A stretch of 64,000 nucleotides of DNA from Thecamonas trahens ATCC 50062 (Eukaryota > Protista > Apusomonadida): NCBI RefSeq assembly GCF_000142905.1, contig NW_013657654.1, positions 248,001-312,000 of the forward strand. Direction: 5' to 3'. Positions 10,175-33,921 of this stretch are shown here, in pieces. A program made the translations under genes and the position numbers. Position 1 is the stretch's first letter, and each line of letters opens with the position of its first letter. The notes under the pieces are model-generated. The model ran no database searches and was not told where the DNA came from. It was given only the letters and a program-made list of their open reading frames with translations.

Positions 10175-10680
10175 CCTCCTTCTGTCCTCTGCGGTTGCAA
10201 GAACAAGTGGGTGTGCACGTGAGGGTGACAGACAAGTGTGTCTGTGGCAGGGGGGAAGGGGAGAAGGGGGAGGGGGAGGGGGAAGGGGGGGGGGGGGGTG
10301 CGCGAGTGTGGGCGCGCGCGTCGCGCANNNNNNNNNNNNNNNNNNNNNNNNNNNNNNNNNNNNNNNNNNNNNNNNNNNNNNNNNNNNNNNNNNNNNNNNN
10401 NNNNNNNNNNNNNNNNNNNNNNNNNNNNNNNNNNNNNNNNNNNNNNNNNNNNNNNNNNNNNNNNNNNNNNNNNNNNNNNNNNNNNNNNNNNNNNNNNNNN
10501 NNNNNNNNNNNNNNNNNNNNNNNNNNNNNNNNNNNNNNNNNNNNNNNNNNNNNNNNNNNNNNNNNAATGGGGGGGGGGGGGCGACAGGGCGAAGGGGAAG
10601 GGCTTGGCCACCTCCCTCGGTGGCAGGTTGATGGCCACCGCTCTCCCCCTCCCCCCCCCCCCCTCCTACCTCCTACCCAG

Positions 10681-14776: not shown

Positions 14777-16749
14777 ATGACTAAGACCGTGATCACGACA
14801 GAGGCACCCCTCTCACACGCACCATGCCCTGTTGTTCAGCCCTGTGGAAGCTTGTCGAACCAGAATAGAGAGGCTCCTTGCTGCAAGCTCTGCGGCAAGC
14901 AGATTAGCCTCAACAGTTCCAAGTCGACCTCAAACATCAAAAGCCACTTCCGAAACGCCCACGGTGATGTGCTGTCGGTCCTGGACGTCGACCTGTCCGC
15001 GTCTCCAGCCAGCGGATACAGGCGTACTTCCCGTCGAAAGACCGCTTGAAGGATGCAAAGCCGCGCGTTGCGGAATACGCTCTCAAGAGCATGCTGTACA
15101 AGCACCGCTCGTTTGCCTCGATCGAAGACCCGTACCTCGCCCACATGCTGAGTGGACGTCGTCTGGGACGCGCCACACCTTTCTCGGTGTGTGTGCCCAG
15201 TTCTACATGCGGGGATGCGCACAACTATCCCCATTGGGTTCAAGGCGCTCACCGCCGATCTCATGAACGCTGTTCGCTCGACGTCTGAGGGCAGCGCCGA
15301 GTATAGCACCACATATCTCACCACTAACGCCGAGAATGTTGCCAATGTGGTGAAACTCTGTGTAGCAGAGCTCGGGATTGACTGGGTCCAGGTAGTCGCC
15401 TTGTCTAGCAACACGACGGTGCTCATGCCCCGTATGGCAAAGCACTTCCTCGAACTTCAGTGGCATCCATGTCTCTCCCACCGCATTCAGCTCATCGTCG
15501 GTGACGTGCTCAAGGCGATCCAGGTTGACAGTGAGCTGGATCCTGCCTTGGTGCAGTCAGACTTGCCCTCGAGCTGTGATACGACCGTCCTCGAGATGGG
15601 CGGCATAGGCGAGGACACAGACGACGATGACGACGAAACGAGGATGTCTTCTCGGAAGTGGTATCTTTGTCGTCGTCAGAGTTGCTGACGCCGGGTGATG
15701 CCGCTGCATCCGATGACCGTGCCTCAGCTCCGCTTGTGGGAAGCACTGACGCAATTTCGAAGCTACGCTGCCTCGTCTCTTATCACCCGCTCGTCCAAGG
15801 CCAAGCGCACGATGCTTCACTTCATCAACAAGAAGAACATCAAGGGTAAGTGCGCATACAAGTCCGCGCTGAACTCATTTGAGGTGGATGTCCGACTTGG
15901 TCTCGTGACCGTGGATGACAAACCGTCTCCACCCGTCCTGACGACATATACGTCGCTGCGGCCGGACGTGAATACTCGCTGGGGCGCGACGGTGACTATG
16001 CTAGAGCGGGCGTCGAGGATGAAGAATGCCGTAGATTTCGTTTTGACTGAGATCGCGGGTTCCCGGGCTGAGTTGGCCGCCGGTGAGTGGGTCGAGGTAC
16101 ATGATGCTGTGGAAGTACTCCTCACAATCAACAACTCGTGCGTCATGTCTCAGACGTGCCGTCCTCCCTCTCGATCCTTACGATGGTGGGCATTGTAGAC
16201 GATCTAGCAGAGCTCAAGATCAACAACAATGCTATCCCCAGGATCCAACAGCTGTGCGACATCGCCAGCCAGGCAGTGTACAAACAGGTTGCGTACTTGT
16301 ACAAAGAGGATGCGTGCCTCTTTGCTCTCCTTATTGACGCGACTGTCACCAAGGACGACCTCACGTACGTCCAGGGAGTTGTCGCCGACGCCAACAACTC
16401 GCTCGGTGTGCGCAATTTGGTGACTGCTGGGGAGGTCCACCATGACATGTGGCGGCGCTTGGTAGACGTCCTCGAGCCCGAGCTCCTCGACGATCTGTCC
16501 CCGCTCCCCTCTGATATCGCGTCGTCATCGGGTGGAGCGAGCAACACGCTGCCGCAGCAATCGCGGCACCCCACGTACTTTTCCCCGAACATGTCTGCTG
16601 CCGGTGGGCCATTCAAGTCGGTGGTGTCTGGATCGGCGTCATCGCTACAGGCGCGCTCACGGATGGACGCGGAGCGCGAGGCGCGCGCTCGTAAAGTTGC
16701 CAAGCGCGAGAAGAACGCGAGGAAGCGCCTGCGCCTGCCTTGCTATTAG
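14777..16749 (+). mobile_element. Degenerate hAT-superfamily transposase (BED zinc finger + RNase H-like core), several frameshifts and a stop; termini not identified
   Basis: CKLCGKQI...STSNIKSHFRNAH (zf-BED), HRSFASIEDP, NAENVANVV..ELGID, WHPCLSHRIQL (CxxH) and DVNTRWGATVTMLER spread across five ORF fragments; lower GC than the flanks. Confidence 0.82.
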
Positions 16750-17355
16750 CTTCCTTGCTGCCGCCATGTTTTTGCTGATAGAGAGGGAAGAAGCCGTACG
16801 CAGAAGACACCATCACAACTACGCAACCAACTAGTTGTGGCCTTTGTCCAAAGGCTATCTGCCTTCCCCCTCCCCCCTCCCCTCCCCTCCCCCTCTCCCC
16901 CCCCCTCTCCATCTGCGGCTGGTGCAGTCTGCTGCGGTTGCCAAGGAGTGCCATTGCCAGTCAGCTCGGTCTTGGTCTCTTTTTGCTCACGTGCCACCAC
17001 CGCCACCGCCACCGCCATCGCCACCGCCTCTGCCATACCTCACCTGCCACCTCCATTCCTCTCTCTCTCTTCCCACCCATGTAGTACGCTTTCTCTCCTC
17101 CTCCCCCCTTCCCCAACCACCAGAAAAGAGATATCTACTTTTTGACTACAAGGTTAACAACTTTATGTTAATTTGATGTANNNNNNNNNNNNNNNNNNNN
17201 NNNNNNNNNNNNNNNNNNNNNNNNNNNNNNNNNNNNNNNNNNNNNNNNNNNNNNNNNNNNNNNNNNNNNNNNNNNNNNNNTACGCTCTCTCTCCTCCCTC
17301 CCCTCCCCTTCCCCCCTCCCCCCCCCCACCCCTCACCCCTCCTCCCTCTCTGCAG

Positions 17356-19804
17356 TCTGGTGGTCGTTGCCCTCACTGTCGCGCTCCTTGCTGGTCACAC
17401 GGCAGCCGATGTCGACTGCTCTTTCCCGGGCGCGATGGAGATTGTGCCTGGCCACTGCGTCTTTAGGCCCTTAGCTCCAAGCGCAAGCTTTGCTTCCACT
17501 GTCAGCACTTGCAACGCCCAAGGTGGCTTCCCGGCTGTCCTGCCCACCCGTGGCTTTCGGGCCATGGTCAAGTCCAAGCTCGGTATCTCCGGGACGAGGT
17601 GGACCGGCCTCAAGTACACCACCAATCGTGGCGTCGGCTTTGTCTGGGCTGATGGTACTTCGGTTGAGGGCCTCGACTTTGAAGCCGGCTCGCCCTCGCT
17701 GACGGAATCGGTCTTCGCGATGAACTGGAACCCATCGCCCCCGCTTTTGCAGACCCGGAACAGTTTGGAAAGGCTCCCCGCTCTCTGCTCTGGCCGTACC
17801 AGCTGCTCCGTTTCACGCTGCGCGCGATGCGCCATGGAGTCGTCGACGCTGTGTCATACCTGTGCACCGGGCTGGGCCCTGCCAGACTGTACCACTCCAG
17901 CGAGCCGTGGCAGATGGCTGCTGGTGACCGGGAACAACTACGAGGTCAACAACCCGCGCGGCGGCGCCAAGAACCTAGTGGCCGCGGATGTCTTTATCAT
18001 GGACTACTTGCATGCACGCAATTACTCGGTCGAGGTCGTCGGTGCTCAGTGGGTCGGCACCTACCACGCCGCCAACAAGGTCGGCATCATCCTCTCGTCC
18101 AACATCGATGCCACGGCGGCGGGTCAGTTGCAGGGCCTTTTCCGCGACTCGACGCTCCCGCTAGTTGTCTTGACCGGCGAGAGCCTCAAGTGGATGTATT
18201 GGTCGCCGACCCGCGACTGCACCGCCGACAGTCTTGCCCTCTCACCGGTCGACCCAGTCCACCCGCTGCTCCACGGCGTTGTCTTTGATGGCGGCAGCAG
18301 CACCACCGTGCTTACCGGATACTCTGGTACACGCTGCGCCCCCACAAGTGCAGGACCCGGATTTGTCGCTGTTGCCACCGACCCGATTTCCGGATCACTC
18401 CAGCTTGGGCTCTATCCGCGCGGCAGCGTCCAGCACGTCCGCAGCGACTATCCGATTACGTACACCTCGCAGGCGCGCGGCATTTTCTTTGCCATGAATC
18501 CGACGCAGGGTGCTACCTCATACACAACGTCCGGCATCAAAATCGTCGACAACCTGTTCCGGTATGCCACGGCCGCCGCTGTCGACGACTCCATGGTTGT
18601 TGCCGTCTCGCCGCGCAACGTCGGTCTTCCCAGCAGCGACGACGGCGATCGCTCAGTCAACGTCGCGCTGAGCCTCGGCGGTTCACTTGGAGGTGGCAAC
18701 ACTTACCCAGGCCTTGAGTTTGGCCTCTCGTTTGATGGCTGTACCTCGGTCGAAGGCCATCTCATTTTTGAGCTCGACGACGACGCCAGCGCTTCGATCG
18801 CCGTCAACAGCACCTGGGCAGGCCGTGTTGCCCGCATCTGCCTCCGGTCGTATGACGAACCATCGTGGCTCCGGCAGACCGCATCTGATGCCAGTATCCG
18901 GTTTGTGGCAACGTTGCCGACCGAGATCGTGGCCTTTGCGCCGACTGTCGTTCCTGGATCTGTGCCGACCACGCTCTCGGTCTCTGGCCGCGAGTTTTCG
19001 ACTTCTGACTCGCGCATCGGCATCTTTGCCAACCCTGGCTGCTACCACGGTCTGATCGCTAGTGTTCCCTACTCGAGCGGCGAGGTGTCGTTGCCTGCAC
19101 TTGGCGTCACCGGTCCCCACTACGTCTGCCTCTCCCATTCGCCCGGCTCCCCGTCGTGGGTCGCGCAGACCTCGCCCGAGAGCACCCTCGTGTTTGTGAA
19201 CGGCTCAGACGTACTGACAGGCGTCGTGCCGACAACCTTTATGGCGAGCGACTCGGTCGCACTGGATATTCAAGGTCTTGCAGCCATGCCGCGCAACTCG
19301 ATTGTGGCACTCACTGGCGCAGCCTCGACTTGTTCAGCCTCGGTAGCTTCTGTTGCCATCATTGACGCTGAGACCGCTGTGGATCTCGGCCGCGTCACCG
19401 CCGCTGGCGACTACAAGCTCTGCTTCTCACCCGACAACGGTGTTACTTTCACGCCCTTCCCATCGCTCACTGTGCAGATCAAGGCTATTTCGTCAACTTC
19501 GATTGTGTCGCTCTCACCATCATCGTTTTCTGCCGGTACCGCTCTTGCCGGCACCACCGTCGACTTTGCCACCGAGTTTGATCCGCTCGGGTCGCCTGCC
19601 CTCGGTCTCATTGCCTCTCACGACGAGTCGCTCTGCAACGCGACGCCGCTTAAGTCACCTGTTTCGGGCGGCAAGGCGTATTTTGCGTACGCCAATCTCG
19701 CGCCCATCGCCTCTGGCACCTGGTATGTTTGCCTCTCGCCACGCGGCGGCGCCGACGACACATGGTTGCTGCAGGAGGCGTCGACCACCATCAATATCCT
19801 TTAA
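17356..19804 (+). CDS. Secreted protein (gene A): C-type lectin domain, Cys-rich segment, alpha/beta region and about 4 copies of a ~95-aa two-Cys module; first exon probably in the gap
   Basis: Acceptor ctctctgcag at 17355 then the tail of a signal peptide (LVVVALTVALLAGHTAA). CTL motifs CNAQGGFPA, WTGL and FVWADG; repeated YxVCxS..W..Q motif; no TM segment. Confidence 0.8.
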
Positions 19805-20558
19805 CCCTTAACGGTACGGTCGTTCAGACGTGTTGTCGCGCGTCTCGAAGTGAACAACTCGATGATGCCTGAGTTGCCGTTGCAGTGACGGACGCCTGGG
19901 AGCACGGGCGAGGCGCGCGAGGTGCTGTATGGCGCCGATCCGGAGGAGCGGCGGGCGCGGACGGTGCGGAGCTTGTCGTTGACGACCCCGACGACCGGGA
20001 AGGAGAACATTACAGAGTTGAACACCGCGGCCAGACGGGAGAGCGCGAGGACGTCTTGCGACGGACGAGCTTGCCGGTCGGCGTGGCCGCGCAAGTGGTG
20101 GCACGCCATCCTTGTATTGGATTCTGGACGCCGCGCTCATCGACGCGGACGCGCTCTGCGCTGACGCGAGCCCACGCCCCGCCATGACTCGCGTGGCTTT
20201 TCTCTACGACATCATCGACACCCTCGCCACCAGCCCCGACGCCGTCAGCTCGGCGCTGTTGCCGCCAGCGGAAGCGTCCCTCTGCAGCGGCTGCTCGTCA
20301 TCACCACCTTCCACAACAAGCCGCCGTGCGACACGACTGCCTCGCCTGCCGGAAGCTTCATGGTAAGCGATCGCGGCCGCGGACCTTTTGCGCCGCGTGC
20401 GGCGTCCATCTCTGCATCGCCGACTGTTTTCTGTTGTGGCAGCCATTAACACATTGTACTACTCTTGTACCGCGATTGATGGACGTTGCGACGTCTGCGA
20501 AGCGTCGCGGAGCGCGGCTTGCGCGATGGACAAACTGTCCATTCCGAACCGAAAAGGT
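19805..20558 (+). mobile_element. Internally deleted piggyBac-like element with TTAA target site
   Basis: Left end TTAA|CCCTTAACGGTACGG and degenerate inverted right end CCGAACCGAAAAGGT|TTAC. Internal remnants RKWWHAIL/LYWILDAALIDA and CLACRKLHGKRSRPRTFCAACGVHLCIADCF match the piggyBac transposase C-terminus and Cys-rich domain. Confidence 0.85.
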
Positions 20559-20573
20559 TTACACACGTTTCTC

Positions 20574-23500
20574 TCACATCGACGACGACGAATCGCACGA
20601 CGATGAAGATGACGACGGGACATCTTGCGGTGGCGGTCCCGGGGGCCTCGGCGGAACCAGAGGCATCTCAGGCGGCGGCGGCATCGACAGCGGCATCGGC
20701 GGCGGCTGGGAAATTGAGGTCAGCGGCGAGACGCTCGTGTCGACCGAGTCAAAGCAGCACGATGAGAGCGAGTTGCAGGCAGAGGTCGGCGCCATCGTGC
20801 TCATTGGCATGGCCAGAAACTGCGCTGTGCTCCCATCTACCAGGCTCGACTTGGCCTCGTCATCGTCGACGACAGAGTCAAGACCGCGGTACGGCGTCAT
20901 GCCAAAGTCCACATTCGTCGAGCCGAACGAAGGATTGGTTGAGCCAAAGACCGGGTTCATCATCAACCCATTCTCACTCTCCAGCACGCCGCTGTCAAAG
21001 TCTACGGCTGCATGATGCCCGACTGTCATCATCTCGACCCCGGACTCCATGCCGGCGCCTTCGAACTCGATGTTCTCAAAGACCAGTTCGGCATCCTCTT
21101 GGTCGCGCTGCTTGATCCGCCACAGCTCGTAGACCACTCCGACGCACACAATTCCCAGCAGTGCCACCAGCGCTGCGATCACAACTCCGTCGCGCAGAAC
21201 CCGCGACGACGTGATGGTCCCGCCCCACAGCAGCACCACAGACCCGAAGAGCGTTGAGAAATCCATCATGTTGTGGTGTCGCTCAGCGTATGGATAGTGC
21301 CGTCCAAGCAGCGAGTATGCCAGTACGCACTGCAGCATCAGTGCGACCATCGTCGCCTTGACTGTTGGCGACGAGAATGCGCACACAGAGACCACAACCC
21401 CGAGCTTGCGCCCGAGAATCACGAGCTCGTACCAGAACAGGTCGCTCCGATACTTGGCCACAAGGAACGCGTACTTGGACGCAAACGTCACCTCATCCAA
21501 CGCCGCCTGCTTGCGCTTCAGGAACATGCCCAGCAGCACAGGAATGGCCGTTCCCACAATCAGCGCCACAGTCAGAATCAGTGGCAGCAGCGTGTACCAT
21601 GACGATGTGTAGCACCGCCGTTGCGGGTTGGTCGTCATCACCACGATCCCGCCGCCCACATCGGTGCAGTCCACATACCGCAGTGCCGCGTACATCAGCG
21701 GCAGATATAGCAGCAGGATCGTCTGCAGGTACCCACGCCCAGCCGCGTACACCACCGCCCACTCGAGGGAGCACAGCGAGCGCTTGTTGCCGTACACGCT
21801 GTCGGCATCGCGCGAGGCCTGCCACCTCCGCATCACGTTTCGCAGTCCGATGTACCCGAGGGTGACCACGGCAAACGGAAACAACAGGATCGGCAGCGCC
21901 ATCGTCATGCCCCACTTGAACATCCACACGTCGCCGACGTCCACTCCGCACTCGGGTGACGCCAGGTCGAGGTTGAGGTTCACCAGCGAGACAACGTCAA
22001 ACACCCCGCGCACCAGCGGGTGCCACTCCAGCCGGATCGTCCCGTAGATCGCCACAGCCTGCAGCGTGTTGAGCGCAATGACAAACGCCGCATACCCGTA
22101 CACCTTGGAGTTGCGCATGTTGATCCATACCACGGCCGCCACAAATCCAAACACCGCCAGCACCAGGCACACAATGATCAGCGCGTTCGATCCCTTGCAC
22201 TTGCGGCATCCGTCGCCAAACTGGTACCAGCCCTTGGTGCACTCGGCGCACAGCCGCCCGCGGTAGCCCTCGGTACAGACTCCGTTGCCGGCACACGACG
22301 CCGGACGCGGACATGCCACAAACGAGCTGCCGTCGTCCGAGAGCTCAAAGCCGGGGCCCGGCCGTGGCGGCTCGTGGCCGCCGGCGCAAACCGCACCAAA
22401 CGGACACGGAACACAGCCCTGGCCCTCGACCTGGCCGTTCGGCCCGAACCAGTATGTGGTGAGGCAGGTGCAGTTGATCCACGACGCCGATCCCTCGGGC
22501 GCGCGCATAAACTCGGGACATGCCGTGCAAAACGCAGCGTTGCGCGTCTCCGAGTAGGTGCCGACCCCGCACGGAACACATGCCCCAGTAGTGCCGGACC
22601 CGACACTTCGCGTTCCGGGAAGACACGTCGTTGAGACCTGCGCCACATACGGCGAGCCGAGAATGTCCTCGCCGCCGACCTGGATCCGCAGCGTGTACGT
22701 TCCACCCTCGGCCACAAGCACGCTGAACGAGAGCTTGGAGCCGGCAAGGCTAAACGATGTCACCGGCGTCGTCTTGACGCCGAGCCGCATCGCAATCGAC
22801 ACAGCTGACGCCAGCGGTGGTGTTGTCACCTCGTTGTCGTACGCATCGCGGAGCGTGACACTGTATGTCACCACCGTCGCCGTCTCGAGTGAGAGCGTGC
22901 CCGTATCGGGCAGATCGTCGAGAGTTGACGCTGCTGCTGACACTGGGCCGGGCACGACCTCGGCGTCGACGGCAGTAGTTCCGAGCACAAAGTCGACGTT
23001 GTTGACAGCGAGCTGGAGCGTGTACGTAAAGCCCGCAACCGTCGGCGGCCGCATCGTCACATCGTATATACCGTTGGTAGTGTAGGTGGAGACCGTGACC
23101 AAGTTGTCGAGCGAGGCAAGCTCGGCCGGCGCCGAGACGTACGCCTGCGGCACGTCAAGCCCAGTCTCGACCGGCTGGACCAGGGAGTCGCGAATGGTCA
23201 TCTGGAATGGGCCGATGGTGTCACCGGCAACCACGGTGTATTGCGGGACGAGGCCAGCGACAAACGAGTTGGTGATGTTGAACGCCGAGCAGAACGGCGG
23301 TGTGGCGCCGGTCCACATCGATCCCAAGATGGGCGTCCACGTGCACGTCCGCGCCGTCGAGCCGAGGAGGGTGAAGCCGTCATCACAAGCAAACGAGCAC
23401 GTCTCGTCAAACGCACCGGGCGTGATCGCGTTCGACGCCCCGGTACAGGTCGTGGTCCCGTCAAGCAGCACCGGGAGCGGCGGGCACGAGACCTCGGCGC

Positions 23501-26500
23501 AGGTGGGCGGCGGCTGGCTTGTTCCGTTCCAGCCTCCGCCCATGCACGTCCGCTCCTGGAAGCCGAGGACAAAGTCAAAGCCCACATCACAGGTGTAGGA
23601 GGCGACTGAGCCGAGATAGCCAAAGTTGGAGAAGGAGACGGTACCGTTGGCCGGATCCGAGAGCAAGTTGCAGGCGTACGGCGGCGGCGGCGATGGCGGC
23701 GGCGGCGACGGAGGCGGAGGAGGCGGCGGCGACGGCGGCGGCGGCGGCGATGGCGGCGGCGGAGGAGGTGAGGGAGGAGGAGGAGGAGAAGGAGGAGGAG
23801 GAGAAGGTGGTGGTGGAGAAGGTGGCGGAGGAGGCGAAGGAGGAGGAGGGGAAGGCGGCGGCGGCGGCGAGGGCGGCGGCGGCGGCGGCGAGGGCGGCGG
23901 CGGCGAGGGAGGTGGCGGCGGCGATGGAGGAGGAGGGGCGGTGGCGATGGGGGCGGGGGTGGCGAGGGCGGCGGCGGCGGTGGCGATGGCGGCGGCGGCG
24001 GTGATGGCGGCGGCGGCGGTGGCGAGGGAGGCGGCGGCGGCGGCGGTGGATGCAACACAAATGTGACTCCGCTCTGCTCCACCCAGGCTCCGCCGTCAGT
24101 CGCCCGCTTCCGTGCACACACTCCGTAGGCTCCGGGCGTTATCTGCCCATTGACCTCGAGCCAAAACACCCCAGAAGTCCCGCTCACGCTCACATTGCTT
24201 GCGCTTGTGACGTTGTTGCATCCGTCGGTGGTGAGCCCGACTTCGTCGACGGCGCGCTCGTTGGCGGCCGTGAACCGCATCACCACCGCGATCATCCACT
24301 CTTCGGCGCTGGCTGGTGCCAGGCCGCTCACGCTTGTGCTAGTGACGTTGGCCACCGCCAACGTGGCTGTCTGCTTGGCAAAGTTGGATCCGCCATCAAC
24401 CGAGTAGCACACATCGAGATCTCCAGGTGAGGCGAGGACGCCGAGATCCACCAGCGGCCCGCCGATGACCGGAGCGTAGGCGACCCAGCCAGAGCCGGCC
24501 TCACATGCCATGCCACTCGCCACCAGCCCAACAACCGCGCCGGCACCAGAGACCGTCCGCGCGCCCACAAACCGGACTACAGCCCGAGTTCCAGCATCGA
24601 CAGCTGGAGGAGCGACGGCGGTGATGGTGCCTGCCGCGGTCACCACATCGACGGTTCGACCCATGTCTGTCCAGCCATCGCTGGCCGACGTTCGCATGCA
24701 CACTGAGTATGATCCGGCGACGGCGGGCGTTGCCAGCGTCACGTTCTCGGTTGAGGCCGTGTAGGGCGCCGAGGCCGCGACGGTAGCACAGCCGGTAGTC
24801 GAGAGGCCGATCTGGGTTGTGGGCGAATGAATGGGGTGAGCCGGGTCGACGATGAGGACAAACGAGACCGGAGTGGCGGCTGGGAGGACGGTCGGAGTGA
24901 GTCCGCGGAGCGCAGACGGAGCAGCCACGACGTAGGTGAGCGAGAGTCGCTTCTGATGGACCCATGCGTTGTTGGCGGCCGAGCGTGTGCATACCGCGAA
25001 CGTGGTAGTTCCCGACGAGGCCGCAGCGCGGAGATTGGCATCTGGAAGGACAAACGATGCCGATGCGGAGACAGCGGCGACGCGACCAAAGTCGCACATC
25101 TGTGCCGGCCCGCGGCGCATGCAGGCGTAATTTTCCATGGATGATGTGAGAGTATGCGCTCTCCACAGGCCGCCGTTGCCGACGCGCTGGATCAAATAAT
25201 TCTCGCCATCTAGTGGTTCGTCAGACGCCCAGTTGTCATAGAACCCGCGGTCCATCGAGGTGTCGCGGGTTAGCGGCGAGTAGGAGATAGCGGGACCGAC
25301 GTCAGACAAGAGAACATCAGAAGCCAGGTGGCCCAGAACACGAGTTGGGTTATCCCACAGATAGTCCTGGGTGGCAGACCAGGCGAAGTACGCGGACCAC
25401 TCGTCAGCATCGAGCGAGTCGACAAGGAAGCCACCCTGGGCCATGCACTTGGCAAGCGCGGAATTGCGGGACGAGATCCTGTAATCTGGAATCCAGAAGC
25501 AGGCATCAGTCGGGGCGTAGTAGAAGCCCGGACAGGCCGCAGGATCGTAGCTTGCTGGGTCGACAAACGAGATCTGCCCGCTTCCGTCGATGTACGCTGC
25601 ATCGGTTGCTCCAAGCGTCATCATAGTCGCCTCGCCGGCTAGCGCGCTTGCCGGCGTGAGCAAAGTGTACGACGTCGGATGCGGCCGGCCGAGCGCGATG
25701 TTGAGCGTCACAGTCTGGGATTGCCACGTCTCGCCCATGTCGTTTGAAATGCACAACGTGCGGGCGGAGCCGATCTCTGAGACGGGGATCGGGGTGTCGT
25801 ACCAAAAGTACGAGCCGCGGATGGGAACCGGCGAAGAGACTGAGTCACACGCCGCGGTCGAGTCAAAGCCGATGAGTGCCGAGAAGGAGGGGGTGATAAA
25901 CGAGTGGCGGAGGATGAGCGGATAGAAGTTGTCTGCCGGGTTGGTGTAGATTGTCCCAAGGTTGAGAGCAGTTAGGAGCTTGGTGGCATCAAGGCCAACA
26001 CATACGGTGCGATACATAGCCCCATTTCCCTTGCGTCCCACATCTGGGGACTCATGAAGTTGGTGGTGCCCCAGTCTTGTCCGCTGCTGCCGTCGTTTGG
26101 CTCTCCGGGATACCACGAAGAGTATGACGATTGCAGGCCATTGATGCCACGATACTGCCACATGAACGTGTCATCGTATCCCATGTTAGCGGGACTAGTG
26201 GGGGCGATGCTAAAGGCGGCGTTGTTGTATGCCTTTGAGGGCGTCCACAGCGGCCACTCGCCGGTTGCTCGACACTTTGACATAGCCGCTGAGGGATAGA
26301 CAGTCGAGCCATCCAACCGAAAGGTGAGGCCCCACCGATCGATCGCATGGGCGCGCGCCACTGCACGTTGAACCCGAGGTAGGCAAAGCCCAACACGAGG
26401 AAGACAAGGAGGTGGATGAGTGTATCGCAAAGAAACGCGAGTGCGGTGTGGGTGCGAGAGTGGGGGAGGGGAGGGGGAGGGGGAGCTCCCAAAGGCATTT

Positions 26501-26589
26501 TCCGCAGTGACTATTTTTTTTTTCTCCCTGCAAAGATGCGGAGGCGTACCGAAGAGAGCCACACCGAAGACGACTGCTAGCTTGACCAT
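20574..26589 (-). CDS. Large multi-TM surface receptor (gene B): signal peptide, 2 C-type lectin domains, about 5 two-Cys modules, SPn stalk, 2 Sushi/CCP, filamin/Ig-like repeats, Cys-rich (GCC2/GCC3-like) region, about 8-9 TM; frame breaks near 26030 and 23937
   Basis: Exon 1 26589-26550 and intron 26549-26361 (GTACGC...CAG) give MVKLAVVFGVALFVARAHA. Motifs WYPGEPND, NWASDEP, ASYTCDVGF, CSFACDDGFTLLG, GEDILGSPY, CVPCGVGTYS and CTEGYRGRLCAEC, then a TM block with YRSDLFWYELVILGRKL. Confidence 0.8.
21006..23645. repeat. 2.6-kb near-identical direct repeat, copy 1 (copy 2 at 27387-30029)
   Basis: Direct comparison shows an offset of 6381/6384 with a 3-nt indel near 28261, scattered SNPs and one divergent patch. 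Confidence 0.95.
23679..24048 (-). repeat. GGC/GGA/GGT-rich repeat encoding a Ser-Pro4-6 extensin-like stalk of gene B
   Basis: Translates as (SPPPP[P])n on the minus strand. Confidence 0.9.
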
Positions 26590-26748
26590 GAAGAGGGTGT
26601 GTCCAAGCATGGGGGAAGGGGTCGGGGTGGGGGTGGGGGGAAAGGAAAGTGCACGTATACGTAAGGTAGCGTATGTGTGTCACAGAGAGGAAATGGAAGT
26701 ATGCGGAGGGGATGGGGAGAGGTATTGGGGAACGGAGTGTGGTGGTAG

Positions 26749-26780
<32 letters not shown>

Positions 26781-27014
26781 CTCCACCTTGTCGCTTTGCG
26801 TGTTGCCGTCCGCGTGACGGGCGTTTTCGGCATTATGATTCAACCACATTGGGACCACGTGTATTTTGCTTGTCACCGCCCTCCCCATCCACGGCTCATA
26901 TCTCCACTGCCAAGTTGTGCGCGAGGGGAGTGAGGTAGTGCTTGGAAGACGTGTTGGGAGTGGGAGTTTTGAAGTGTTGGCTATGGCTGACCAGTGGTAG
27001 ACTACGGCATCCTG

Positions 27015-30000
27015 CTACGACGACGACGAGCACGATGACGACTGTGGAGGCGGGCCGTCAGGGCGAGATGGCATCGGCGGAGGAAGGAGGACCGACGGCT
27101 GCATTTGAGTAACAGAGCCAATCATCGGATCAACCGTTGTGGCTGAGTTGTTGAGAGAGTCGAGCCCGCACGACGACATTGAGTTGTACGCCGAGACTGG
27201 GAAGGCCATGGAGTTGCCAGGGACCATCAGGCACCCATCCTCACTTTCGTTGTCCGCCTGCCTCGCGTTGCTGTTGCCCATCCCTTCAGCACTCATCACC
27301 GAGTCAAGTCCGCCAAAGTGCATCGACTCGAACGCTGGGTTCATCATCGATCCGACATCGCTCTCATGTACGCTCTCAAAGTCCATGGCTGCATGATGCC
27401 CGACTGTCATCATCTCGACCCCGGACTCCATGCCGGCTCCTTCGAACTCGATGTTCTCAAAGACAAACTCGACCTCTTCTTGGTCGCGCTGCCTGATTCG
27501 CCACAGCTCGTAGACCACTCCGACGCACACAATTCCCAGCAGTGCCACCAGCGCTGCGATCACAACTCCGTCGCGCAGAACCCGCGACGACGTGATGGTC
27601 CCGCCCCACAGCAGCACCACAGAGCCAAGCAAGGTAGCAAAGTCCATCATGTTGTGGTGCCACTCAGCATAAGGGTAGTGTTGAGTGAGCAGCGCGTACG
27701 CTAGCACGCACTGTAGCATCAGCGCGACCATCGTCGCCTTGACTGTTGGCGACGAGAATGCGCACACAGAGACCACAACCCCGAGCTTGCGCCCGAGAAT
27801 CACGAGCTCGTACCAGAACAGGTCGCTCCGATACTTGGCCACAAGGAACGCGTACTTGGACGCAAACGTCACCTCATCCAACGCCGCCTGCTTGCGCTTC
27901 AGGAACATGCCCAGCAGCACAGGAATGGCCGTTCCCACAATCAGCGCCACAGTCAGAATCAGTGGCAGCAGCGTGTACCATGACGATGTGTAGCACCGCC
28001 GTTGCGGGTTGGTCGTCATCACCACGATCCCGCCGCCCACATCGGTGCAGTCCACATACCGCAGTGCCGCGTACATCAGCGGCAGATACAGCAGCAGGAT
28101 CGTCTGCAGGTACCCACGCCCGGCCGCGTACACCACCGCCCACTCGAGGGAGCACAGCGAGCGCTTGTTGCCGTACACGCTGTCGGCATCGCGCGAGGCC
28201 TGCCACCTCCGCATCACGTTTCGCAGTCCGATGTACCCGAGGGTGACCACGGCAAACGGAAACAGAAACAGGATCGGCAGCGCCATCGTCATGCCCCACT
28301 TGAACATCCACACGTCGCCGACGTCCACTCCGCACTCGGGTGACGCCAGGTCGAGGTTGAGGTTCACCAGCGAGACAACGTCAAACACCCCGCGCACCAG
28401 CGGGTGCCACTCCAGCCGGATCGTCCCGTAGATCGCCACAGCCTGCAGCGTGTTGAGCGCAATGACAAACGCCGCATACCCGTACACCTTGGAGTTGCGC
28501 ATGTTGATCCACACCACGGCCGCCACAAATCCAAACACTGCCAGCACCAGGCACACAATGATCAGCGCGTTCGATCCCTTGCACTTGCGGCATCCGTCGC
28601 CAAACTGGTACCAGCCCTTGGTGCACTCGGCGCACAGCCGCCCGCGGTAGCCCTCGGTACAGACTCCGTTGCCGGCACACGACGCCGGACGCGGACATGC
28701 CACAAACGAGCTGCCGTCGTCCGAGAGCTCAAAGCCGGGGCCCGGCCGTGGCGGCTCGTGGCCGCCGGCGCAAACCGCACCAAACGGACACGGAACACAG
28801 CCCTGGCCCTCGACCTGGCCGTTCGGTCCGAACCAGTATGTGGTGAGGCAGGTGCAGTTGATCCACGACGCCGATCCCTCGGGCGCGCGCATAAACTCGG
28901 GACATGCCGTGCAAAACGCAGCGTTGCGCGTCTCCGAGTAGGTGCCGACCCCGCACGGAACACATGCCCCAGTAGTGCCGGACCCGACACTTCGCGTTCC
29001 GGGAAGACACGTCGTTGAGACCTGCGCCACATACGGCGAGCCGAGAATGTCCTCGCCGCCGACCTGGATCCGCAGCGTGTACGTTCCACCCTCGGCCACA
29101 AGCACGCTGAACGAGAGCTTGGAGCCGGCAAGGCTAAACGATGTCACCGGCGTCGTCTTGACGCCGAGCCGCATCGCAATCGACACAGCTGACGCCAGCG
29201 GCGGTGTTGTCACCTCGTTGTCGTACGCATCGCGGAGCGTGACACTGTATGTCACCACCGTCGCCGTCTCGAGTGAGAGCGTGCCCGTATCGGGCAGATC
29301 GTCGAGAGTTGACGCTGCTGCCGACGCTGGGCCGGGCACGACCTCGGCGTCGACGGCAGTAGTTCCGAGCACAAAGTCGACGTTGTTGACAGCGAGCTGA
29401 AGCGTGTACGTAAAGCCCGCAACCGTCGGCGGCCGCATCGTCACATCGTATATACCGTTGGTAGTGTAGGTGGAGACCGTGACCAAGTTGTCGAGCGAGG
29501 CAAGCTCGGCCGGCGCCGAGACGTACGCCTGCGGCACGTCAAGCCCAGTCTCGACCGGCTGGACCAGGGAGTCGCGAATGGTCATCTGGAATGGGCCGAT
29601 GGTGTCACCGGCAACCACGGTGTATTGCGGGACGAGGCCAGTGACAAACGAGTTGGTGATGTTGAACGCCGAGCAGAACGGCGGTGTGGCGCCGGTCCAC
29701 ATCGATCCCAAGTCGGGCGTCCACGTGCACGTCCGCGCCGTCGAGCCGAGGAGGGTGAAGCCGTCATCACAAGCAAACGAGCAGGTCTCGTCAAACGCAC
29801 CGGGCGTGATCGCGTTCGACGCCCCGGTACAGGTCGTGGTCCCGTCAAGCAGCACCGGGAGCGGCGGGCACGAGACCTCGGCGCAGGTGGGCGGCGGCTT
29901 GCTTGTTCCGTTCCAGCCTCCGCCCATGCACGTCCGCTCCTGGAAGCCGAGGACAAAGTCAAAGCCCACATCACAGGTGTAGGAGGCGACTGAGCCGAGA

Positions 30001-31323
30001 TAGCCAAAGTTGGAGAAGGAGACGGTACCANNNNNNNNNNNNNNNNNNNNNNNNNNNNNNNNNNNNNNNNNNNNNNNNNNNNNNNNNNNNNNNNNNNNNN
30101 NNNNNNNNNNNNNNNNNNNNNNNNNNNNNNNNNNNNNNNNNNNNNNNNNNNNNNNNNNNNNNNNNNNNNNNNNNNNNNNNNGTAGAAAGCGGCTGCGCCG
30201 CTGTTGGCTGCAGCCACGGCGGAGAAGTCGGCGGCGGCGAGGGATGTGGCTCAGGCCATCGAGGAGGAGGAGGCTGTGGCGATGGGGCCGGGGGTGGCGA
30301 GTGCGGCGGCGGCGGTGGCGATGGCGGCGGCGGCGGTGATGGCGGCGGCGGCGGCGGCGAGGGAGGCGGCGGCGGCGGCGATGGTGGTGGCGGTGGAGGA
30401 GGAGATGGCGGAGGTGGTGGTGATGGCGGTGGCGGAGGTGCCGATGGGGGAGGAGGGGGTGGAGAGGGTGGCGGAGGAGGAGATGGGGAGGGTGGTGGCG
30501 GCGGAGGCGGTGATGGAGGAGGAGGAGGGGGTGGCGATGGTGGCGGCGGCGGAGGTGATGGAGGAGGAGGAGGAGGAGGAGAGGGTGGGGGTGGTGGCGA
30601 TGGCGGCGGCGGAGGCGGCGATGGAGGAGGAGGAGGCGATGGTGGCGGCGGCGGAGGCGAGGGTGGTGGAGGCGGCGATGGCGGCGGCGGAGGCGGCGAT
30701 GGCGGCGGCGGAGGTGGTGATGGTGGTGGTGGCGGCGAGGGAGGTGGTGGCGGCGGCGATGGCGGCGGCGGCGGGGATGGAGGCGGAGGTGGCGGGGATG
30801 GCGGCGGCGGTGGCGGCGGCGATGGCGGCGGCGGTGGCGGCGGCGATGGTGGAGGCGGTGGCGGAGGTGATGGAGGAGGAGGAGGAGGTGAAGGGGGAGG
30901 AGGAGGAGGAGATGGAGGAGGTGGCGGCGATGGAGGTGGCGGCGGCGGAGATGGCGGCGGAGGAGGAGATGGAGGCGGAGGAGGAGGTGAAGGAGGAGGA
31001 GGAGGAGGTGAGGGAGGAGGTGGCGGCGATGGAGGTGGCGGCGGCGGAGATGGCGGAGGAGGAGGAGATGGAGGCGGAGGAGGCGAGGGTGGCGGCGGAG
31101 GAGGAGGCGAAGGTGGCGGTGGAGGCGCCGGCCCTGCCCTTGCCACCACTCTTGGTAGCTGCGACTCGGAGGCCAAAGCTGATCGGCCACATACATTTCA
31201 GACCAAATCAAAAGAAAATGAGAGAGCGGAGAACGGGAGAGAGCGCGAAAAGGAGCGCGAGTTTGAGAGCGAGAGCGAGAGCGAGAGAGTGAGTGTATGT
31301 ATGAGTGTATGTACGTATGTGTA

Positions 31324-31364
<41 letters not shown>

Positions 31365-31516
31365 ATGTGTGTGTGCATGCCCCCCCCTTCCCCCCCCCCC
31401 CCCCCCCCCTCACCCCCTCCACGTGTACTCGGTTGACGCCACTTTGAACGAAACCTACCATGATCCGTCAGCAGGCACGTGACGACGGCAAGGGCCACAG
31501 CCGTGACCAGCACCAT
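27015..31516 (-). CDS. Paralogous multi-TM surface receptor (gene C): signal peptide, ~300-aa Ser-Pro4-6 stalk, gap, then the same Sushi/Ig/Cys-rich/TM core as gene B
   Basis: Exon 1 31516-31459 and phase-1 intron 31458-31179 (GTAGGT...CAG) give MVLVTAVALAVVTCLLTDHALASESQLPRVVARAGPAPPPPPSPPP...; the core is nearly identical to gene B. Confidence 0.82.
27387..30029. repeat. 2.6-kb near-identical direct repeat, copy 2
   Basis: Matches 21006-23645 and ends at the N-gap. Confidence 0.95.
30220..31130 (-). repeat. Extended (Ser-Pro4-7)n coding repeat, roughly 45-50 units
   Basis: ORF 29971..31176 reads SPPPPP repeatedly. Confidence 0.95.
31290..31376. repeat. (TG)n/(TATG)n microsatellite inside the first intron of gene C
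   Basis: Directly visible. Confidence 0.9.
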
Positions 31517-32358
31517 GTCTGTCGTCCGAGTGCACACCATGGTCTATGGTTGCTACCGACGTAGGGTATATAGACTTGTTGGGTGAATCGAGACGAGAAT
31601 GCCTGTCTGCCCTGCAGTAGCCCCCAAGAGGCGAGGGGAAAGGGGGAGTGGCAGAGAACGAAGGGTACTGGCGAAAAGCCCTTTGCGCGCGTGAGCAAGT
31701 TTTTTTGGGAAGAGTCCCTTCATTGCACACGTGGTTGTGTTGTGGCTCCTGCTCTTTGGTCAGCCTTTCCCCGCACCTACCTCGTCGCACACAACCTTGA
31801 AACGGGCGCGTCTTAGCTCAATCCTCACAATGTTGGATATACTACCTACAAGGGCTATCCTCTAGCTGGACGATGGTGGTGAAGGACGGCGTCGTCGTCT
31901 TCCCCGTCGGGGTTGTCCGGCCGTTGGATGGCGGGCGATTGCGGGCGGGCGGCTTTGCTGCAAGTGTACTGAACGGGGAACGCGGCGCTCCGCTCCTTTC
32001 CCTCGCCTCTCTCTCCCAAGACCATGTTGAACAAGACCGAGTGACCACAACCAGAACCTACACTACCAACCCACCCCACCCCGCCCTCTTCCCCCCTCCC
32101 CTCTACCCCACCCATACTCCGACCCGGGCTGTGGTGGCGGGACTAAGCCGCAATTTTTTCTTGTCTCACTTGTTCCCACACAGCTATGCCAACCACAGCC
32201 GGTCGTCTAACATCGCATGTCACGCGACATGTGCCACTCGCTCCCGCGGGGTGCCCTTCCCGCATACGATGCCCTTGTTGCTCTCTCTCTCACATACACT
32301 CGCGCGCTCTCTATACTTGGCGCATAGGCTTGGACCAGCAACCCACTCGTCTCCACCC

Positions 32359-33921
32359 ATGACGCCACCTGTACGACACCTCGTTGCGGCACTTGTGGTA
32401 CTTGTGCTGGTGCTGGCTGGTGCTGGTATCGATGCCGCTGGCTACGACCGCGCCGCTTGCGAGGCCGACAAGCTGGCTCATCCACCTGGGCTACCTGACG
32501 TGGCGAGTGGCATGCGGCTTGTTCGGCTGGTGACTCTGACTCGGCATGGCGATCGGACGCCTGGTGTCCCACTCTTCACCTCGCCGCCGTTCAACGTCTC
32601 GTGGTCCTGCCCGCTCGTCCGGGTGCTCGCCGACTCGCCGCCGGTGGCCACCCCGACTGCTGCCGTCTCGTTCATCCCGGGCCGCCAGGCTCTCGCCGGG
32701 GATTGTACCACATCATGGCTCACAGTGCGCGGTGCAGAGCAGCTGCGAAGCCTAGGTGCCGCTATCGGTGCGGCGTGGATGGACCCTGCGGTGCCCAACT
32801 CGCTGGCTGCCGAGATCGCCGCCGCACGCAACCGCTCCGGCCTTGTGGCCTATGCCCGCTCCACAGACGTCGCTCGCACGCTGATGTCCGGCTTGGCCTT
32901 TGTGGACGGTCTGCAGGCGCACTCGCCCGCTGGTGACCTGGGCATTTCCTCGCTCCACACCATCGCGTCGGGCCACGACAACCTCATGCCCGGCCCACAG
33001 TGCTCACGTTTCGGCTCTGTCAACCGCGGCGCACTGACCGCGACACCGGCCTCGAGCTTCATGGCCGAGCCGACCATTGCCGCCGCGGTCAAGACGCTCG
33101 ATGCCGTGTTCAATGAGCTCAACACCTCGCTACCGTTCACCGATCCGGGCTACAACTGGCAGTACCTCATGGACAACCTGCAGTGCAAAGTCTGCCACAA
33201 CAAGACCATTCCGCCGGCGGTCAGTGTGGCGCTCTTTGACGACATTGTCCGCATTGCTTCCGCCCGTTGGGCCTTCCAGATCAACGCGCCCGACGCAGTC
33301 AAGCTCGCCATGGGTACCTTGTTCTTTGAGCTGGCCGAGATGATCGGGGCCCAGGCGGCTGATCTCGACACCACCCCGGTCTTTACCTACCTCTCGGCCC
33401 ACGACTCGACGATAGCGTACATGCTGGCTGGCCTCCGCGCCGGTCTTGGCGGCTTTGATGGCGTCTGGCCACCGTACGCCTCAAACCTGCACTTTCTGAC
33501 CTATGCCGACCCGGCTCATCAACTTGTTGTCCTCCCGATTTACAACGGCGCCATTCTCGATGTCGCCTGCGCCCAGCGCGGCGACGGCCCTCTGCCGGGC
33601 GCCTGCCGCATCAATGACTTTATGGCACTCCTCAACAGCTCGGCCGTCTCGTTTGACGAGTACCCCAAGTTCTGCCGCAACCCGCCGTCGCCGCCGTCGC
33701 CCGCACCTGCGCCTGCCACCGGCCTCGCTGCCCAAACCCAGGGTGGCCTCATTGGCGGCTTCCTTGGCGGCTTCACCGGCCTTGTCGCCGGCGCGCTCAT
33801 CATGTCTCTCATTCTCCGCCACCGATCCCCACCCTCCGCTGCAACCACGGTCTCGGCCTCCCCTACCACTCCGTCCGAGTCCGCTCCGCTTGTCCCTGCC
33901 TTTCCCAGGCGCGGGCCGTAG
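32359..33921 (+). CDS. Histidine acid phosphatase (lysosomal type; signal peptide and C-terminal TM anchor)
   Basis: RHGDRTP, RSTDVART..S, YLSAHDSTI and WPPYASNLHF; signal peptide from ATG 32359; TM segment GGLIGGFLGG...ALIMSLIL. Confidence 0.93.
   Translation: MTPPVRHLVAALVVLVLVLAGAGIDAAGYDRAACEADKLAHPPGLPDVASGMRLVRLVTLTRHGDRTPGVPLFTSPPFNVSWSCPLVRVLADSPPVATPTAAVSFIPGRQALAGDCTTSWLTVRGAEQLRSLGAAIGAAWMDPAVPNSLAAEIAAARNRSGLVAYARSTDVARTLMSGLAFVDGLQAHSPAGDLGISSLHTIASGHDNLMPGPQCSRFGSVNRGALTATPASSFMAEPTIAAAVKTLDAVFNELNTSLPFTDPGYNWQYLMDNLQCKVCHNKTIPPAVSVALFDDIVRIASARWAFQINAPDAVKLAMGTLFFELAEMIGAQAADLDTTPVFTYLSAHDSTIAYMLAGLRAGLGGFDGVWPPYASNLHFLTYADPAHQLVVLPIYNGAILDVACAQRGDGPLPGACRINDFMALLNSSAVSFDEYPKFCRNPPSPPSPAPAPATGLAAQTQGGLIGGFLGGFTGLVAGALIMSLILRHRSPPSAATTVSASPTTPSESAPLVPAFPRRGP

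Follow-up and report, generated by a model that had tools for sequence, protein, structure and literature searches.

We consider here three adjacent genes (A, B and C) that code for surface proteins with shared domains in a 64,000-nucleotide stretch of DNA, referred to as the window, from the gliding protist Thecamonas trahens. Homologues are the T. trahens proteins AMSG_12410, AMSG_10681 and AMSG_12368 (55-61% identity). A preliminary description of this DNA had read the locus as an ectodomain-swapping system; its anatomy of the locus largely holds, while its interpretation does so only in part. The features are collected in Table 1.

Table 1. Features of the A-B-C locus (positions in the window)
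Feature	Position	Strand	Remarks
Degenerate multi-copy element, hAT-like	14800-16735	+	Upstream of gene A; broken frames; DUF659
Assembly gap	17181-17280		Upstream of gene A's visible exon; followed by pyrimidine tract and CAG acceptor (17353-17355)
Gene A main exon	17356-19804	+	ORF; hydrophobic signal-like stretch, then CTLD, Cys-rich piece, ~230-aa domain, four Ig-like modules, stop
Gene A C-type-lectin-like domain (CTLD)	about 17408-17790	+	Matches PLA2R/FcRY lectin domains
Gene A four Ig-like modules	about 18620-19801	+	By alignment to gene B modules
~750-bp high-copy repeat	19810-20565		Takes up the interval separating the 3' ends of A and B
Gene B core	20574-23654	-	2 Sushi, 2 filamin-type Ig, Cys-rich, DUF7630, membrane domain, tail (Pfam and AF2)
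Gene B SPn stalk	23655-24049	-	About 130 aa; frame broken by 1 nt within a C-run (about 23936)
Gene B head	24050-26017	-	~130-aa domain (YTNPADN...), divergent lectin-like domain 2, four Ig-like modules
Gene B lectin-like domain 2	about 25076-25558	-	Marginal profile match
Gene B exon 2 start, C-type lectin domain 1	26018-26360	-	EPN motif; frame break near 26020-26040
Gene B intron 1	26361-26549	-	189 nt, phase 1, GT..AG; read by hand; acceptor AG ends at 26361
Gene B exon 1	26550-26610	-	ATG at 26610 and 20-residue signal peptide
Gene C core	27015-30030	-	Architecture as B; last helices and tail diverged
Assembly gap, gene C stalk/Sushi junction	30031-30181		Flanks collinear with B
Gene C SPn stalk	30182-31178	-	About 330 aa; short non-repeat segment beside the gap
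Gene C intron 1	31179-31458	-	280 nt, phase 1, GT..AG; contains CA microsatellite; acceptor AG ends at 31179
Gene C exon 1	31459-31516	-	ATG at 31516 and signal peptide

Layout of the three genes

The reading frame of gene A opens at the acceptor 17355/17356, 75 nt past the gap, and its ATG exon may lie inside that gap or beyond it. The N-terminus matches the solved C-type lectin domains of PLA2R and FcRY (E 1e-4); the EPN/QPD motif is absent from this domain, and a search of gene A with Pfam Lectin_C gives nothing at E<=0.1. Domain searches gave no assignment for the ~230-aa domain in the middle, and no transmembrane segment is found besides the N-terminal hydrophobic stretch. Gene A comes close to the form earlier ascribed to it, having a C-type-lectin-like domain with modules and no membrane anchor. 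Its C-terminal residues 493-809 are collinear with residues 390-700 of the gene B head at 25% identity (E 6e-19), an alignment that covers the four homologous modules of ~95 aa in each gene, which are modelled as tandem Ig-like beta-sandwiches. As had also been observed, the stop codon of A aligns to the place at which B passes into its PPPP stalk. A is not a soluble copy of the B head: only the modules align, and the closest relative of A, at 43% identity, is a gene on another scaffold. The further proposal that A acts as a decoy or opsonin therefore finds no support. Gene A probably encodes a secreted protein of its own that has no more than domain types in common with B.

Copies of mobile elements flank gene A; hAT and piggyBac remnants in or beside the cluster had been reported before. 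The upstream one may be hAT-like, with a match to DUF659, a domain typical of hAT elements (E 3.2e-5, below the Pfam cut-off). This element has five near-full copies elsewhere in the genome at about 89% identity, plus fragments, and no dimerisation or catalytic transposase domain is detected in it. The repeat downstream has 64 genome matches at 79-93% identity, drawn from 129 first-look candidates. Its suggested piggyBac identity is not upheld: the sole piggyBac-type signal, zf-Tnp_2 on 20326-20580, is weak (E 0.066, 14 bits versus a cut-off of 24), and what is left is a high-copy repeat.

Genes B and C each start, in agreement with the preliminary description, with a short signal-peptide exon and a phase-1 intron. 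The two lectin domains ascribed to B differ in how well they can be recognised. The first has 38 PDB matches, all of them C-type lectins (best E 5.9e-4, mannose-binding protein A), and its EPND aligns with that of mannose-binding protein A, while WDA replaces WND and the frame break follows. Given the kept EPN, glycan recognition by this domain is plausible. The second is marginal: a profile of four paralogues reaches the mannose receptor, FcRY and DEC-205 at E 0.005-0.04, a single-sequence search against solved structures gives no C-type lectin match, the EPN/QPD motif is absent, and the region (residues 220-296 of the AF2 model of the head) has a pLDDT below 50. Pfam Lectin_C finds nothing at E<=0.1 in either the B head or the first lectin ORF. 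Paralogues of the head, on C35, C12 and C46, are 33-40% identical to it.

As assembled, gene B is not one open frame, and two 1-nt corrections are required; its two long frames, of about 700 and 1,030 codons, are otherwise open. The break near 26020-26040 is placed at the end of lectin domain 1, before a conserved ...YRTVC, because of the continuous homology to the uninterrupted paralogues on C35 and C12. The break at about 23936 is seen in the three-frame translation, and B is one base shorter than C in the alignment there.

Gene C consists of a signal peptide, a long SPn stalk and the core of B, the composition first proposed for it, with the stalk-core join crossing an assembly gap. To either side of the gap the sequence follows B without rearrangement, position 30029 of C corresponding to 23645 of B and C 30217-30384 aligning to B 23883-24049 with 91% identity, which makes the join credible. 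With the 151 N as written the stalk and core frames are one apart; they agree only when the gap is in truth a multiple of 3 in length, and a B-like length would be 201 nt. Pro-rich repeats also lie at the flanks of other gaps of the window.

The repeat units of the stalk are Ser-Pro(4-7), present in B, C and the close paralogues L004-L010. In the 11-gene subfamily nearest B they always lie between the head and the first Sushi domain, with a conserved PPPP-YAC junction. By these repeats the stalk may be called extensin-like: long Ser-Pro(4-7) repeats also serve as extracellular spacers in plant and green-algal extensins, whereas the host here is an apusomonad and the repeat forms an internal stalk of a membrane protein, not a wall polymer.

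The membrane core and its family

We turn to the core that B and C have in common. The two are 97.9% identical over 2,662 bp (B 20990-23645, C 27371-30029), with C at ~99% identity to B between the gap and about 27730, so the claim that both carry the same core stands. DUF7630 (PF24633) is matched at 42.5 bits in B and 42.6 bits in C (cut-off 27) and Sushi/CCP at 26.3 and 23.7 bits (cut-off 20.7; two stretches in each); the Cys-rich domain is TNFR/ephrin-receptor-like, with Pfam matches to Ephrin_rec_like/NCD3G-like families. The AF2 model of the core (pLDDT 83.8) has a multi-helix membrane domain, after which gene B ends in a Pro/Ser-rich cytoplasmic tail.

Searched genome-wide, DUF7630 occurs at no fewer than 144 sites, some 125 of which exceed the Pfam cut-off, and a protein search with the core returns 45 or more paralogous cores; every one of 25 aligned paralogues has a DUF7630 match. 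In the paralogues that were sampled, the sequence upstream of the core codes for Sushi arrays, filamin Ig, right-handed beta-helix/PMP repeats or FG-GAP (most of the distant ones being read to about 1.5 kb from the core). Varied ectodomains on a constant membrane core, as had been suggested, are found both in the locus and family-wide, and most family members have a varied ectodomain without any SPn. Five SPn-bearing paralogues, L004-L008, have all retained a single, homologous type of head; with heads 24-41% and cores 50-59% identical, they diverged without swapping. The head of L010, which also has SPn, has no Pfam match of its own. The B/C family is a real set of more than 100 uncharacterised multi-pass membrane proteins with many outer domains.

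The membrane domain was compared with the Pfam TRP family PF06011, which includes fission-yeast Pkd2 and budding-yeast Flc1-3. B and C themselves give no match at E<=0.1. The family is matched, however, by 5 of the 25 aligned paralogous cores, and a genome search yields 47 sites. Of these, 14 exceed the cut-off, and several share an open frame with a core match; one of the 14 (C9:446098) is L008, and the matching paralogues are 34-47% identical to B, L008 having the highest value. The matches fall mainly at positions 230-410 of the 426 in the model. Through this transitive homology the B/C membrane domain is probably distantly related to PF06011. Neither Foldseek nor VIA places TRP or PKD2 channels among the structure matches of the membrane domain, and against solved folds the best helical matches have Z 8.5 or less, within the helical-bundle background. 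With no solved TRP channel or other fold above background, a channel function is conjecture.

Recent history of the cores and alternative explanations

A tract of 98-99% identity is common to B, C and a third copy, which is located on another scaffold (C36). Its 5' edge lies inside the SPn repeat, where in the C36 copy it meets a gap. At its 3' end the B-C tract stops in unique membrane-domain sequence with no repeat: the synonymous divergence between B and C amounts to 0.015 over the ectodomain and membrane part versus 0.18 directly 3' of 21400. B matches the C36 copy at 98.6% identity as far as the stop codon. The dN/dS among the three cores is 0.06-0.2. In C and C36 the signal peptide stands alone on the stalk, so that the stalks are seemingly bare. 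The analysis shows the anatomy and the evolutionary history of the locus, and the tract looks like the product of recent duplication and/or gene conversion.

We hold it probable that B and C are a tandem within a lineage-expanded mosaic family whose cores were recently homogenised, that A is separate, and that the proteins are surface sensors. The constant unit of the family would comprise the Cys-rich TNFR/ephrin-receptor-like domain, DUF7630 and the multi-helix membrane domain; in the B subfamily it would be preceded by two Sushi and two filamin-type Ig domains and by the extensin-like stalk with a variable head. The three cores would have been homogenised lately by duplication and/or gene conversion, with the 5' limit in SPn. 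We infer for the B/C family a role as cell-surface sensors of contact, ligand or force, in which the stalk would keep the binding head off the membrane domain and the membrane domain may gate ion flux or signalling.

Several other explanations can be weighed against this reading. Because gene B needs two 1-nt corrections, it may be a recently dead pseudogene, with C and/or C36 working and no lectin-tipped receptor made from the locus. The two breaks are independent relative to the intact paralogues, and the B core ORF has no in-frame upstream ATG or signal peptide of its own. Both breaks, however, fall in short homopolymer runs, where draft assemblies presumably err, both long frames are otherwise open, and most of the changes that separate B from the other two cores are synonymous (9-16 versus 5 non-synonymous). 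We consider a dead gene B unlikely, yet a possibility to be taken seriously. The gaps within SPn in C and in the C36 copy, the independent contig L031 that likewise ends in SPn, the frame break of B within SPn and the Pro-rich repeats at the other gaps of the window could instead point to wrong joins or collapses, by which the stalk and signal exon of C, or the head of B, came from another copy. Such an artefact is improbable: the head-stalk-core junction of B is gap-free and continuous, both gap flanks of C are collinear with B, head-SPn-core is the normal layout in single-ORF paralogues, and about 2% of sites differ between B and C, with diverged tails, so that the two are distinct loci.

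The preliminary description had also argued for dedicated diversifying recognition, in which heads are repeatedly swapped by recombination through the GGC-rich SPn and soluble A is a decoy or opsonin. For a recombination joint in SPn there is the 5' tract edge, together with the C36 tract that reaches a gap there; at least three head states occur on SPn cores (lectin and modules in B, the headless C/C36, and L010), with L004-L008 as a fourth, and divergence is quicker in heads than in cores. Yet near-identical cores under different N-termini are found in just one recent event, whose 3' edge lies in unique sequence, and what A and B have in common is the 25%-identical modules, A having its own 43% paralogue elsewhere. 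Heads do vary family-wide, but L004-L008 retain a single head type, and most family members vary theirs without SPn. Repeated swapping through SPn is accordingly given little credence here; there is no sign at the locus of a dedicated ectodomain-swapping machine, nor does it reveal a diversification system of a new kind.

Likeness to known surface systems

Under membrane stretch, Pkd2 turns Ca2+-permeable (PMC9727806). Like Pkd2, the B/C-type proteins are of plasma-membrane type, in which a large N-terminal part outside the cell precedes a multi-pass domain and a long tail on the cytoplasmic side, and close paralogues have PF06011 matches in their membrane domains; the B/C ectodomain, on the other hand, is wholly different. 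The core fold is also common to ESM Atlas clusters of Chlorophyta, Cnidaria, Haptophyta and Porifera (TM about 0.7), whose DUF7630 proteins have the same succession of Cys-rich domain, DUF7630 and membrane fold (TM 0.62-0.73). Their ectodomains vary too (LRR, PMP, Ephrin_rec_like), whereas Sushi and C-type lectin are missing among the common Pfam families of the listed clusters. DUF7630 is mentioned in no paper of the literature searched.

Animal polycystin-1 bears a C-type lectin and Ig-like repeats on a multi-pass TRP-related membrane domain and is thought to be a contact or force sensor. B likewise has a lectin domain and an Ig-like run on a multi-pass membrane domain; on the other hand, no GPS/REJ, PLAT or LRR is found and the B modules do not match Pfam PKD domains. 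We regard this as a resemblance of design, not shown homology.

In Chlamydomonas, Mst1 forms a hydroxyproline-rich polyproline helix and is held at the membrane by the TRP-type channel PKD2 (PMC11015965, PMC7265326). Among solved structures, the core Cys-rich domain is best matched by Mst1 (8tx1, E 1e-8), and the Ig-like module array has mastigoneme chains among its structure matches. In B/C, by contrast, the extracellular array and the membrane domain are in a single polypeptide, the membrane domain is not PKD2-like in any test run, and nothing here points to filament formation or flagellar location. It is conceivable, and in our view quite doubtful, that the SPn subfamily is a one-polypeptide, Ca2+-gating counterpart of mastigoneme and PKD2 and that its GC-rich SPn-coding repeat is a recurrent hotspot where ectopic recombination pairs heads and cores anew. 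A glycosylated polyproline rod would then bear the lectin/Ig head and be fused to the PF06011-type membrane domain, and Ca2+ entry would be gated on the head being pulled or bound. If true, this would be a contact or prey sense for a gliding cell.

The DUF7630/PF06011-type core is widespread in eukaryotes, with many different ectodomains and without a described function, and Thecamonas has well over a hundred copies of it. Apusomonads are close kin of animals and fungi, and their surface-receptor repertoire therefore informs the origin of adhesion and sensing machinery. The locus is a natural comparison, with three near-identical cores of which one is lectin-tipped and two carry apparently bare stalks, and for this reason it is a good start for studies on the role of the core and on the way in which heads are exchanged.

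Genes A, B and C and their reading frames

The genome searched is a GC-rich assembly of 28.7 Mb in 131 scaffolds, in which the window is C26:248001-312000. The features discussed are collected in the table.

Features of the A, B and C genes, their surroundings and related loci (positions without a scaffold name are window coordinates; SPn is the Ser-Pro(n) extensin-like repeat)
Feature	Position	Strand	Description
Gene A	17356-19804	+	single 814-codon frame from a CAG acceptor
Gene B	20574-26610	-	signal exon, lectin-bearing head, SPn stalk, core
B exon 1	26610-26550	-	20-residue signal peptide
B intron 1		-	after exon 1; 189 nt, phase 1, GT..AG
B SPn stalk	24049-23655	-	second 1-nt break at about 23936
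Gene C	27015-31516	-	signal exon, SPn stalk, core
C signal exon	31516-31459	-	followed by a 280-nt phase-1 intron
C36 core copy	C36:139943-143254		98.6% identity with B, extending from the stop codon to within the SPn
A-paralogue and single-TM frame	C8:206864-215318	-	L037-L039, L047
Giants with B-type heads			C35: L041/L049; C12: L042/L044/L048; C46: L043/L045/L046/L050
RabGAP-TBC gene	11573-13192	+	E 3e-55; ordinary neighbour
Branch-2 histidine phosphatase with C-terminal TM	31873-33921	+	E 1e-9; ordinary neighbour
Multi-copy element	14800-16735		one copy; DUF659 signal typical of hAT
High-copy repeat of about 750 bp	19810-20565		64 genome matches at 79-93% identity
Tandem array	42621-43073		self-matches at offsets of 22, 44, 66 ... 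bp, about 90% identity

Pfam Lectin_C gives no match to A or B, after which the lectin domains were sought against the sequences of solved structures. For the first lectin domain in exon 2 of B, all 38 matches are to C-type lectins; mannose-binding protein A ranks first (E 5.9e-4), with EPND aligned on EPND. The head (the domains N-terminal of the stalk) continues with a conserved domain of about 130 aa, a divergent lectin-like domain and four modules of about 95 aa. The divergent domain has a profile match only (E 0.005, the top five matches all being lectin-domain proteins) and its region is modeled by AF2 with pLDDT below 50; the modules are modeled with pLDDT of 70-85 and match, among others, the tandem Ig-like arrays of titin, contactin, cadherins and mastigoneme.

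The frame of B shifts by one base at about 26020-26040, where the C35 and C12 paralogues are uninterrupted: lectin domain 1 ends as EPN...WND...IFC in C35, and as EPN...WDA, then the break, then ...YRTVC in B. With no room for an intron here, we take this break as a 1-nt one; a candidate 83-nt intron (26015..25933) that could link lectin domain 1 with the next frame was rejected, since it would remove residues kept in all paralogues, e.g., YTNPADN. The second break falls in a C-run where gene C has one extra base, and an intron within the SPn of B is rejected since the repeat has no AG on that strand. B has two 1-nt breaks, and upstream of its core frame there is neither an ATG nor a signal peptide belonging to that frame; it is therefore either a single gene with two errors of assembly or a recent pseudogene. 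Its frames were searched and folded as separate pieces, never joined into one protein. An independent contig considered as arbiter of the frameshift (L031, ENA ACIN21-1_SAMN05421913_METAG-scaffold_3264) was set aside, since it terminates in SPn and carries the 3' flank of the C36 locus. This contig, from a sample labelled metagenome, holds the C36 copy and its 3' flank at 98.8% identity, which indicates that the data set includes a Thecamonas differing slightly in strain or allele.

Gene C runs, after its intron, through about 330 SPn residues, a short non-repeat piece, a gap and a B-type core. Over 2,662 bp, the segments 20990-23645 of B and 27371-30029 of C show 97.9% identity, a match that reaches the gap edge, and on the far side C 30217-30384 is 91% identical to B 23883-24049. 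Because both flanks are collinear with the unbroken sequence of B, the scaffold join is credible. From anchor to anchor B spans 237 nt, against 36 sequenced bases and the gap in C. If the gap is taken as 151 N, the SPn and core frames are off by one, while any true length divisible by 3 (201 nt for a B-like gap) puts them in frame. Continuity of the C stalk with its core is likely, as judged from these alignments. Two of the five assembly gaps in the window (17181-17280 and 30031-30181) touch the A/C locus, and both of these, together with 10328-10565 of the window and 9256-9355 of the locus L032, fall within coding repeats rich in Pro and GC or next to them. Since gaps recur at such repeats, every SPn-bearing gene model here is suspect at the stalk.

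The pyrimidine tract before the acceptor of A starts at the gap 17181-17280, and because the readable sequence has no ATG upstream of its hydrophobic stretch, the first exon of A is unseen. A Pfam scan of A gives zero matches and a check for TM segments finds none. Its N-terminal 180 residues match the lectin domains of PLA2R, the IgY receptor FcRY and the mannose receptor (E 1e-4 and upward), its residues 493-809 are collinear with 390-700 of the B head (25% identity, E 6e-19), and its stop falls exactly at the point where B passes from module to PPPP. The suggestion in the preliminary description that A serves as a decoy is unsupported, for at this identity A and B share the module type only and their lectin domains are unrelated. 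The one clear paralogue of A, on scaffold C8, has the same layout (43% and 30% identity over two frames). The domain of about 230 aa in the middle of A (17900-18650, residues 180-430), 43% conserved in that paralogue, remained without assignment in Pfam, PDB-sequence and Atlas searches; the ESM Atlas returns for it unnamed bacterial clusters only (at most 0.90), from which none was made. The C8 paralogue likewise ends just behind a module. Immediately downstream of it, in the same orientation, comes a module-bearing frame of about 2,086 aa with one TM; the two could be a second soluble-gene/receptor-gene pair, or a single gene with an intron.

The membrane core and the heads attached to it

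In B and C alike, Pfam finds two Sushi domains, an Ephrin_rec_like/NCD3G-like domain and DUF7630, and the paralogues show Filamin and Invasin_D3-type Ig domains, placed after the Sushi pair and ahead of the Cys-rich domain. The AF2 model of the B core (residues 340-900, with 25 paralogues; pLDDT 83.8, pTM 0.77) shows small beta-rich Cys-knots and, after them, some ten helices. Searched with Foldseek and VIA against the PDB, only its Cys-rich part is matched, as TNFR-like, and the membrane part has no match above the helical background. The core profile matches the Cys-rich regions of Chlamydomonas Mst1 (E 1e-8), Eph receptors, TNF receptors and the calcium-sensing receptor. Pfam TRP (PF06011) is matched by 5 of the 25 paralogue cores; a genome scan for it gives 47 sites, 14 over the cut-off, several of which share open frames with core matches, including L008, a paralogue 47% identical to B. 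The ESM Atlas, searched with both sequence and model, returns clusters (TM 0.62-0.73) from green algae, haptophytes, cnidarians and sponges that carry Ephrin_rec_like, DUF7630 and sometimes TRP, with LRR, PMP or other heads. Given this spread across eukaryotic groups, the core is a widespread eukaryotic membrane module without described function: no paper in a literature search for DUF7630 mentions the name, and nothing specific was found on the B/C core family in Thecamonas. The protein matches of the core family are T. trahens AMSG_12410, AMSG_10681 and AMSG_12368.

A six-frame protein search yields at least 45 cores from 313 first-look candidates, and a DUF7630 scan of the genome gives 144 sites (about 125 over the cut-off). 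Architectures were read in 30 loci, the heads of distant paralogues for about 500 residues only. In all 11 of the closest members (B, C, the C36 copy and the paralogues L004-L011) the first Sushi is immediately preceded by a Pro/Ser-rich run, which in C and L011 was followed across gaps, and the junction PPPP-Y/F-A-C is conserved in every one readable across it (B, C36 and L004-L010). L004-L008 are single open frames of signal, head, SPn and core with one common head type, a domain of about 200 aa plus a Sushi. The head of L010 is different and larger, with Gly/Ala-rich repeats that by eye resemble beta-helix heads; Pfam finds no match of its own in it. SPn is absent from more distant members, whose heads are made of right-handed beta-helix/PMP repeats, of FG-GAP repeats, or of long Sushi arrays combined with filamin Ig. 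Heads of the B type also stand on other anchors, in giant multi-module proteins on C35, C12 and C46 and in one protein with a single TM on C8. The three giants are very similar, with many Ig-like modules and then, by eye, a Cys-rich PSI-like/IPT-like end; those on C12 and C46 have frame breaks at points that are continuous in C35. The view that variable heads are carried on a constant core is thus borne out, as a property of the whole family.

Mosaic identity among the B, C and C36 cores

Between the SPn and about position 21400 (B coordinates), 150-nt windows are 97-100% identical across the three copies, and each of the three pairings has variants in common. Past that point C drops to 82%, to 78% and then can no longer be aligned, whereas B and C36 stay at 96-99%; the synonymous divergence of B and C is 9/586 in the upstream part vs 19/103 just downstream, and dN/dS among the three cores is about 0.06-0.2. 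Their differing flanks and tails rule out B and C as alleles or haplotigs. Gene conversion or partial duplication among older paralogues, with ongoing purifying selection, would account for this mosaic of identity. In the C36 copy a 100-N gap follows within the SPn, and upstream of it only about 690 bp, with a short hydrophobic ATG-start running straight into poly-Pro, separate it from a divergent RasGEF-like gene.

Does the SPn repeat serve as the recombination joint by which heads are exchanged, as was proposed? The 5' limit of the homogenised tract inside the SPn is one recent event in favour, and the constant position of the repeat is suggestive. Against it, five paralogues have fixed heads, those of L004-L008 being 24-41% identical vs 50-59% for their cores, i.e., one head type that has only diverged; family members vary their heads without SPn; and the 3' limit of the tract between B and C is repeat-free, lying in unique membrane-domain sequence. 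Between B and C36 the 3' limit is at the stop codon beside a repeat element.

This element, the repeat of about 750 bp at whose edge the B/C36 homology stops, takes up nearly all of the sequence between the A and B stop codons and is probably a non-autonomous mobile element; its piggyBac-type zinc-finger signal is faint, and there is no other. Mobile elements are thus present at the locus as had been remarked, although the names hAT and piggyBac are weakly backed.

A possible relay from head to membrane

The stalk may present a binding head (in B, the EPN lectin and the Ig array) far from the membrane, and any binding or traction at that head would be relayed to the Sushi/Ig/Cys-rich base and the multi-helix domain. 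We take fission-yeast Pkd2 to be a PF06011 member. The proposed relay is supported by three analogies: stretch makes fission-yeast Pkd2 Ca2+-permeable (PMC9727806), PKD2 holds the mastigonemes of Chlamydomonas (PMC7265326), and Mst1 is a hydroxyproline-rich rod (PMC11015965). The locus is real; it does not amount to a categorically new system but adds a new architectural variant to a large, so far uncharacterised family.
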